A stretch of DNA of 63,759 nucleotides, counting the filler, from Octopus bimaculoides (lineage: Eukaryota), in NCBI RefSeq assembly GCF_001194135.2. It is 3 parts of 3 records of this genome, joined end to end, with 100 filler letters (N's around TTAATTAATTAA, not from the genome) between each part and the next. Parts side by side here need not be neighbours in the genome. Positions count along the whole stretch, not along the records: positions 28,174 to 53,196 come from NC_068992.1; 2 more parts are not named here. One strand, 5' to 3'. Of this stretch, positions 41,741-41,892 are shown one piece after another (position 1 is the stretch's first letter; every line of letters begins with the position of its first letter). The notes under the pieces were generated by a model that had not been told where the DNA came from, made no database searches, and was given only the letters and a program-made list of their open reading frames with translations. Made by a program: the position numbers and the translations under genes.

Positions 41741-41892
41741 CTTAACAACTTCGGTTGAAACATGAACAGTGCACCCGACCAGGAGTACCACGGGGTATGG
41801 CCACGGTTGGCTTGAATGATATTCAACTTTCACAACATCGAGACTCACTTGTTCCAATATTTCTCTCGTGCATGCGTCTTCAATTGATTCAC
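41741..41892 (-). CDS. NUDT12: NUDT12-like exon: second half of the Nudix box and SQPWP motif
   Basis: 152 nt, acceptor ttacaatag|GT, donor AAG|gtaggt, phase 1 to 0. (G)ESIEDACTREILEQVSLDVVKVEYHSSQPWPYPVVLLVGCTVHVSTEVVK; SQPWPxP is the NudC signature. Confidence 0.95.

Follow-up and report, generated by a model that had tools for sequence, protein, structure and literature searches.

A natural glutamate-to-glutamine substitution at Nudix-box position 20 of NUDT12 in Octopus bimaculoides and other coleoid cephalopods

NUDT12 is an ankyrin-repeat, zinc-ribbon and Nudix enzyme that hydrolyses nicotinamide adenine dinucleotide in its reduced and oxidised forms (NADH and NAD+) and removes NAD caps from RNA. 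The 63,759-nucleotide stretch of Octopus bimaculoides DNA analysed here (the window) carries the last four coding exons of this gene (A-D) on its minus strand, joining in frame, and the metal-binding glutamate at position 20 of the encoded Nudix box is replaced by glutamine. In the sequences sampled, this Gln is not peculiar to O. bimaculoides but is fixed across Octopus, Argonauta and a cuttlefish. It lies in an intact, expressed NUDT12 open reading frame (ORF) that is under purifying selection. By analogy with laboratory mutants of homologous enzymes, we lean towards the view that coleoid NUDT12 is a strongly attenuated hydrolase or a metal-dependent binder of NAD(H) or NAD caps. Its current annotation is that of an ordinary NUDT12 hydrolase, and in the literature library searched no paper mentions NUDT12 together with cephalopods.

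Spliced from exons B and C, the octopus Nudix box reads GYIEPGESIEDACTREILEQVSL. It fits the canonical GX5EX7REUXEEXGU at positions 1, 7, 15, 16, 17, 19 and 23, but not at positions 20 (Gln) and 22 (Ser), exactly as the first-pass annotation had read and placed it. For comparison, approximately 330 genuine NudC/NUDT12 Nudix boxes, bacterial and animal, were retrieved; position 20 is Glu in 324 of them, and the remainder are the coleoid Gln sequences. As every non-coleoid box has Glu here, the Gln lies far outside ordinary variation in the family. Position 22 is naturally variable in the same boxes (G in 308, with N, D, S and A also present), and Asn stands there in DR_0079, a Nudix hydrolase that is active (PMC5389931). 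For both reasons the Ser is probably of little importance, and the idea that it is itself disabling was rejected.

The role of the replaced residue is known from mouse and bacterial homologues. In mouse Nudt12 with adenosine monophosphate and three Mg2+ ions, Glu370 binds Mg2 and Mg3, Glu374 binds Mg1, and Glu415 binds Mg1 and Mg2, with the attacking hydroxide bridging Mg2 and Mg3 (bioRxiv 10.1101/474478). Octopus Q444 was matched to mouse Glu374 from the alignment (index offset 121). Of the three Glu metal ligands, the E370 and E415 equivalents are kept and the E374 equivalent is Gln; structure alignment shows that the Glu373 equivalent is also kept. In Escherichia coli NudC, NAD hydrolysis by the E178Q mutant is 'almost undetectable', yet its crystals contain bound NAD and both its fold and its dimer are preserved (PMC5034116). 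This mutant is a routine inactive control, and the earlier equation of position 20 with NudC E178, and of E178Q with the standard inactivating mutant, is correct. The E373Q/E374Q mutant of mouse Nudt12 likewise has its deNADding activity abolished (bioRxiv 10.1101/474478). By analogy with these two mutants, hydrolysis by the coleoid protein would be strongly reduced. The coleoid substitution is identical to E178Q and occupies the identical box position in a homologous enzyme; E178Q, however, is a laboratory construct in a protein without an ankyrin domain, whereas the coleoid change is natural and fixed across the sampled coleoids.

The Gln codon is well supported at the RNA level. Exon C (41741-41892) is covered, over exactly its own length, by RNA sequencing contigs of three runs and by 29 raw reads of another three. 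They show no differing letter and no internal joint, and their overhangs continue exactly into exons B and D. Furthermore, about nine RNA runs contain most of the sampled words of exon A. Transcription of NUDT12 and its modelled splicing are therefore confirmed, and the messenger RNA carries CAA; all covering RNA shows this codon, which settles the check on raw reads that the first-pass annotation had proposed. No edited letters at the Gln codon were listed among the RNA reads (approximately ten reads cover the codon, and listing needs at least three variant reads). That CAA cannot become a Glu codon by adenosine-to-inosine editing, as had been pointed out, follows from the genetic code.

These results also bear on whether the Gln is an artefact of assembly or base calling, belongs to a decaying gene or pseudogene, or lies in an exon normally cut at an internal GTGAGT. 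The assembly is gap-rich and filled with microsatellites, and CAA/GTGAGT (41848-41843) resembles a 5' splice site, both of which would suit such an explanation. Against this, CAA is found in RNA reads and contigs of several runs and in the genome assemblies of two other species, the ORFs are intact in five species with a ratio of nonsynonymous to synonymous substitution (dN/dS) well under 1, no RNA joint occurs at 41849, and O. sinensis and Argonauta have other letters in place of the hexamer. These results already refute both an assembly error and simple decay of the gene. The hexamer at 41843-41848, directly after the Gln codon, resembles a strong 5' splice site that would be in frame to exon D if used. 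This alternative donor was considered and rejected, as there is no RNA joint at 41849 and conservation is lacking, O. sinensis having GTGAAT and Argonauta ACCAAT in its place.

Box positions 15-23 read REILEQVSL in O. bimaculoides and in O. vulgaris (protein model), REILEQVNL in O. sinensis, RELLEQTNL in Argonauta hians and REVAEQVHL in the cuttlefish Acanthosepion (Sepia) pharaonis (protein model). Three independent genome assemblies, those of O. bimaculoides, O. sinensis (L008:34921) and A. hians (L009:49719), share the codon CAA. As the Gln is common to Octopus, Argonauta and the cuttlefish, these sequences indicate that the substitution predates the split between octopodiform and decapodiform coleoids. 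The two groups diverged roughly 250-300 million years ago. Over 386 aligned codons, O. bimaculoides and O. sinensis differ with a dN of 0.033 and a dS of 0.129 (dN/dS 0.25), and the Nudix domain alone, with a dN/dS of 0.15, is the most constrained part of the gene. Between O. bimaculoides and Argonauta, dN/dS is approximately 0.07, with dS saturated. These values, well under 1, answer the earlier question of neutral decay in the negative. When the 51-residue peptide of exon C was used in an exhaustive HMMER search, no further Gln-type sequences were returned. The C-terminal 151 residues alone, used as a protein query, gave 17 short fragments, mainly bacterial, and none from cephalopods, apparently owing to a length filter. 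The most promising short match of the HMMER search, P0137 ('GESIEDAC...', on contig L010), was rejected as the canonical NUDT12 of an unrelated invertebrate, with approximately 30% identity to cephalopods in exon A.

Other departures from the canonical box and active site were also seen. In the pufferfish Takifugu rubripes, the NUDT12 box (P0035, P0037) is REVEAESGV, so that Ala takes the place of mouse E373 at position 19; this may be benign, since NudC E177A keeps about half of its activity. The A. pharaonis protein (P0292) has SLPWP in place of SQPWP and His at box position 22, a further departure from the canonical active site.

Several lines of evidence bear out the identification of the gene as NUDT12, including Pfam matches, structure matches, the tree and shared introns. 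The window encodes 386 residues, an exact match to positions 147-532 of XP_014779437.1, which is annotated as 'NAD-capped RNA hydrolase NUDT12 [Octopus bimaculoides]'. Residues 1-146, with ankyrin repeats and an N-terminal extension, are encoded by exons outside this stretch. Pfam identifies NUDIX (E 1.1e-10) and Zn_ribbon_NUD domains, while ankyrin families match residues 92-175 of full-length XP_014779437.1. The NUDT12/NudC architecture is therefore present, with ankyrin repeats, an N-terminal Nudix-like sub-domain, a zinc ribbon and a C-terminal Nudix domain. The best sequence matches in the PDB are mouse (E 5.5e-68) and human (E 2.2e-66) NUDT12, over residues 56-381. The AlphaFold2 model has a mean predicted local distance difference test score of 85.3, with blocks of the C-terminal (Nudix) domain at 93-97, and its top Foldseek match is mouse Nudt12 (6o3p_B, E 9e-36). 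Template modelling scores to NUDT12 are only 0.44-0.52, probably because the monomer model packs its two sub-domains unlike the crystal dimer; given the Foldseek E value and the sequence match, these scores were not counted against membership. The Nudix fold is kept in the model despite the E to Q change at box position 20, a feature of pseudoenzyme type.

The features that the first-pass annotation listed as retained are all present: the four zinc-ribbon Cys (4/4 invariant columns in a 50-sequence alignment), the Tyr of NYPRVDP, SQPWPYP and the downstream Glu in VNEEELKDASWF. The specificity motif is SQPWPYPVV in octopods, with its SQPWP core intact, and the last Ser of the consensus is variable in canonical molluscs too. 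The boundaries of exons B, C and D are identical in L010. In a neighbour-joining tree, coleoids form one clade that is sister to gastropods plus bivalves, and this position and its branch length fit orthology at a roughly doubled rate. On these comparisons, the gene is the coleoid orthologue of animal NUDT12.

The Gln is accompanied by other changes in the coleoid lineage. Between coleoids and other molluscs NUDT12 identity is 39%, against an average of 59% among those other molluscs, and identity to non-mollusc animals is 35% for coleoids and 46% for other molluscs. Neighbour-joining root-to-tip length is 1.29 in coleoids versus about 0.91, suggesting a protein clock that is roughly two-fold faster. 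In 36 canonical animal NUDT12s, 91 alignment columns reach a conservation of 90% or more; all five coleoids keep 56 of these columns, and 22 are changed in at least four. Besides E444Q, the changed columns include M467L (NudC M201, an NAD-contact residue), I396V (NudC I132), F426Y (mouse F356, adenine-stacking), A424S (the mouse equivalent, A354, binds Mg1 by its backbone carbonyl), R438T/S/Q and D482N. The exchanges at the F356, I132 and M201 equivalents are conservative, and the aromatic and hydrophobic NAD pocket is preserved. The binding residues that are kept include the equivalents of Y318 and NudC W194, as well as E7, R15, E16, E19 and the E415 equivalent, the last five being invariant in 5/5 coleoid sequences. 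Overall, the cuttlefish protein is only 54-58% identical to those of octopods.

Both ends of the protein have also changed. A C-terminal -NL (ANL/SNL/PNL, resembling peroxisomal targeting signal 1) is found in 107 of 123 canonical animal NUDT12s and in no coleoid, where the compared C-termini (P0001, P0002 and P0292 included) are RVE, RDE, PLI and HIC; in O. bimaculoides, ...THRVE and the stop codon lie at 38595-38606. Cephalopod NUDT12, lacking this signal, is probably not peroxisomal. The region ahead of the first ankyrin repeat spans 108-124 residues in coleoids versus a median of 45, giving about 65-75 extra residues. This extension has no family match in Pfam. One motif within it is conserved between octopus and cuttlefish, QERF.MYLQWVWHCRNH versus VVQWVWYCRNSH (P0287 residues 1-120; P0002, P0292). 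Together, the lost signal, the gained N-terminal region and the fast evolution would point to a changed cellular role on the coleoid stem.

Compared with mammalian NUDT12 (mouse 6O3P and human 6SCX), an NADH pyrophosphatase that also decaps NAD-capped RNA, the coleoid protein has the same architecture and 36-37% identity over about 320 residues. As in mammals, the Y318 and F356 equivalents are aromatic, and E370, E373, E415 and SQPWP are present. Unlike the mammalian protein, it has Gln for E374 and Ser, Asn or His for G376, lacks the C-terminal -NL, is about 65-75 residues longer at its N-terminus, and evolves approximately twice as fast as the NUDT12 of other molluscs. Nudix folds with replaced box glutamates are known from other natural proteins. 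The box of NUDT21/CFIm25 is GX5EX7RLX2EIXGR (PMC5389931), and the NUDT9-H domain of vertebrate TRPM2 binds ADP-ribose without hydrolysis (PMC4974056). Both domains have been kept as ligand- or RNA-binding modules. However, they belong to other Nudix subfamilies and have lost at least two catalytic residues, while coleoid NUDT12 has lost one, which makes its loss of activity less certain.

There are several readings of how the substitution affects the protein. The Mg1-binding Nudix Glu became Gln in the common ancestor of octopuses and cuttlefish, and the Gln has been retained since then in an expressed, selected gene. If coleoid NUDT12 is an attenuated hydrolase or binder, it would still fold and dimerise, and its retained Mg2/Mg3 ligands and aromatic pocket would still bind adenine nucleotide and pyrophosphate. 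Instead of decapping fast, it could then be a very slow 'timer' enzyme, or bind NAD(H) or NAD-capped RNA for long periods in a metal-dependent way. A number of points weigh against attenuation. Every other catalytic or metal-binding residue is strictly conserved in the coleoid sequences, as continued catalysis would predict, and in the Nudt12 mechanism the nucleophile bridges Mg2 and Mg3, whose ligands are E370 and E415, not E374. The carbonyl of Gln can ligate Mg2+, and appreciable activity might survive or be restored by other lineage-specific changes such as R438T, D482N and A424S. Attenuation and binding are themselves argued by analogy, and for mouse Nudt12 the mutant documented is the double one, E373Q/E374Q. 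In most natural Nudix pseudoenzymes, as in NUDT21 (box RLxxEI), at least two glutamates are gone (PMC5389931). In addition, the decapodiform state rests on one annotated cuttlefish protein, with Nautilus and squids outside the sample, and the absence of a paralogue comes from match lists of protein databases, not whole-genome searches.

Some of these points would favour an enzyme that is still an efficient NADH and NAD-cap hydrolase, in which Gln ligates Mg1 through its carbonyl or other substitutions compensate; metal preference (e.g. Mn2+) or substrate range may have been altered, amounting to tuning and not loss. Residual or compensated catalysis is suggested by the invariance of E7, R15, E16, E19 and the E415 equivalent despite the low identity between cuttlefish and octopods, and the strong constraint on the Nudix domain (dN/dS 0.15) and the holding of the catalytic hydroxide by Mg2/Mg3, not by the E374-bound Mg1, agree with it. 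Active Nudix hydrolases with non-canonical boxes are also known, namely yffH, NUDT16 and DR_0079 (PMC5389931). Nevertheless, the same single substitution leaves NudC with almost undetectable NAD hydrolysis, Glu-20 is found in all other retrieved NudC/NUDT12 boxes, so that the family is normally intolerant of change here, and the coleoid-specific substitutions bring no new acidic residue (D482 even became Asn). We therefore regard an efficient coleoid hydrolase as the main rival reading, a real but lesser possibility.

The first-pass annotation had also suggested that the protein could be a dominant-negative dimer partner of an active NUDT12; more broadly, a catalytically dead subunit could form heterodimers with an active NUDT12 or a NUDT13-like paralogue and inhibit or regulate it. 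NudC and NUDT12 are obligate dimers with active sites built from both protomers, which would make such interference feasible. However, a search with the octopus protein returned only Gln-type proteins among cephalopods, plus canonical ones from other phyla. A search with canonical limpet NUDT12 gave about 45 mollusc orthologues (gastropods, bivalves and a chiton) but no match in the annotated Octopus, Argonauta and Acanthosepion proteomes, and none of the retrieved sequences is intermediate between the coleoid and canonical types. With no canonical cephalopod NUDT12 among the protein-database matches, the dominant-negative idea loses its support and is very improbable. The Gln form instead appears to be the sole coleoid NUDT12, on evidence that is good but not conclusive.

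Attenuated hydrolysis or metal-dependent binding thus remains the reading that we favour by analogy, if modestly. A more specific version of it goes further, proposing that the only NUDT12 of coleoids has turned into a metal-dependent NAD-cap/NAD(H) binder (a 'substrate trap') that has moved out of peroxisomes, gained a new N-terminal module and become the first dedicated animal reader or protector of NAD-capped RNA. We consider this version speculative and rather unlikely.

The positions of the features discussed are listed in Table 1. Exon A matches XP_014779437.1 residues 147-382 at 100% by tblastn and was also aligned to the mouse and human NUDT12 structures. Exon B holds the adenine-stacking Tyr (Y of NYPRVDP, mouse Y318 equivalent) and Nudix-box residues 1-6. 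Exon C is bordered by a tacaatag acceptor and an AAG/gtaggt donor, and the third metal-ligand Glu (mouse E415 equivalent) lies at 38741-38739 in exon D, within the sequence that opens that exon.

Table 1. Coordinates of NUDT12 features in the O. bimaculoides window
Feature	Position	Strand	Content	Basis
Exon A	44919..45625	minus	ankyrin-repeat end, linker, N-terminal Nudix-like sub-domain, zinc ribbon	ORF and splice sites
Zinc ribbon, four Cys codons	44932..45003	minus	C208/C211/C226/C231 (386-residue model), FCPTCG...GCTNGKC	Pfam Zn_ribbon_NUD E 9e-6
Exon B	44160..44303	minus	GLLNTNYPRVDP...MFFCVSGYIEPG; NYPRVDP...SGYIEPG, ends in phase 1	RNA ends from exon C run exactly into exon B
Exon C	41741..41892	minus	remaining Nudix box and SQPWPYP (ESIEDACTREILEQVSLDVVKVEYHSSQPWPYPVVLLVGCTVHVSTEVVK)	RNA coverage confined to 41741-41892, spliced on both sides
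Gln codon CAA	41849..41851	minus	Nudix-box position 20 (Q444 of XP_014779437.1; mouse E374, NudC E178)	
Ser codon AGT	41843..41845	minus	Nudix-box position 22, Gly being usual	
SQPWPYP	41792..41812	minus	NADH-pyrophosphatase specificity motif (consensus SQPWPFPxS)	sequence read and structure alignment
Exon D, last coding exon	38595..38753	minus	VNEEELKDASWF...SWLETHRVE and stop	RNA ends from exon C run into exon D

Some gene models (L008, P0001 and P0289) and related sequences differ from this layout. The O. sinensis RefSeq model is without the ankyrin-repeat exon found in the O. bimaculoides, O. vulgaris and Argonauta models, and its residues 99-102 are unmapped at the locus. The O. vulgaris model extends approximately 36 residues beyond the conserved ...THRDE C-terminus. 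Both the missing exon and this C-terminal read-through look like annotation artefacts. On L010, an invertebrate contig from a metagenome assembly in the European Nucleotide Archive, the last NUDT12 coding exon occurs again, inverted, on the minus strand at 13569-13757, approximately 3 kb downstream of the intact gene and adjoining reverse-transcriptase ORFs. In a predicted protein, P0138 (219 aa), the NUDT12 'YHSSQPWPFPASLMLGC' exon segment is present as three copies in tandem, which suggests a tandemly duplicated exon or repeat in another animal genome.

Repetitive sequence surrounds the octopus exons. Overlapping ORFs occupy 42253-42911 on the plus strand, in the intron between exons B and C (e.g. 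...NLSWSSYVNSKLDLARKICSWILRTFRSRD...HLECCCPLWSP...). They look like the tail of the reverse transcriptase of a retrotransposon without long terminal repeats; a Pfam search of these ORFs gave no match at E <= 0.01. A short interspersed repeat occurs in both orientations at about 30128-30328, 31320-31577, 34765-34974, 35998-36132, 39158-39358 and 52126-52371. It translates as '...RPRKDE.QSR.R.NLNSERKDGRN..KHF.RRA...' and often stands beside long AAT/ATT or similar triplet runs. This is probably an element resembling a short interspersed nuclear element that is abundant in the octopus genome.

Only a few animal enzymes, NUDT12 among them, are known to take NAD caps off RNA, and to our knowledge no dedicated animal reader of these caps has been described. 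Coleoids are already known for their unusual RNA biology. Here, a whole lineage keeps what is apparently its sole NUDT12, expressed and selected, with the exact substitution that laboratories use for inactivation. What is new is this clade-wide, natural 'dead-mutant' form of a known enzyme, which should be moderately surprising to specialists in Nudix enzymes and NAD caps. If the family works without its 'essential' Mg1 glutamate in these animals, the Nudix mechanism would need revising in this respect. If not, evolution would have made a substrate-trapping binder of NAD(H) or NAD caps, whose partners and RNA targets could be directly pulled down. The finding also implies that NAD-cap turnover and peroxisomal NADH hydrolysis are handled otherwise in cephalopods than in other animals.
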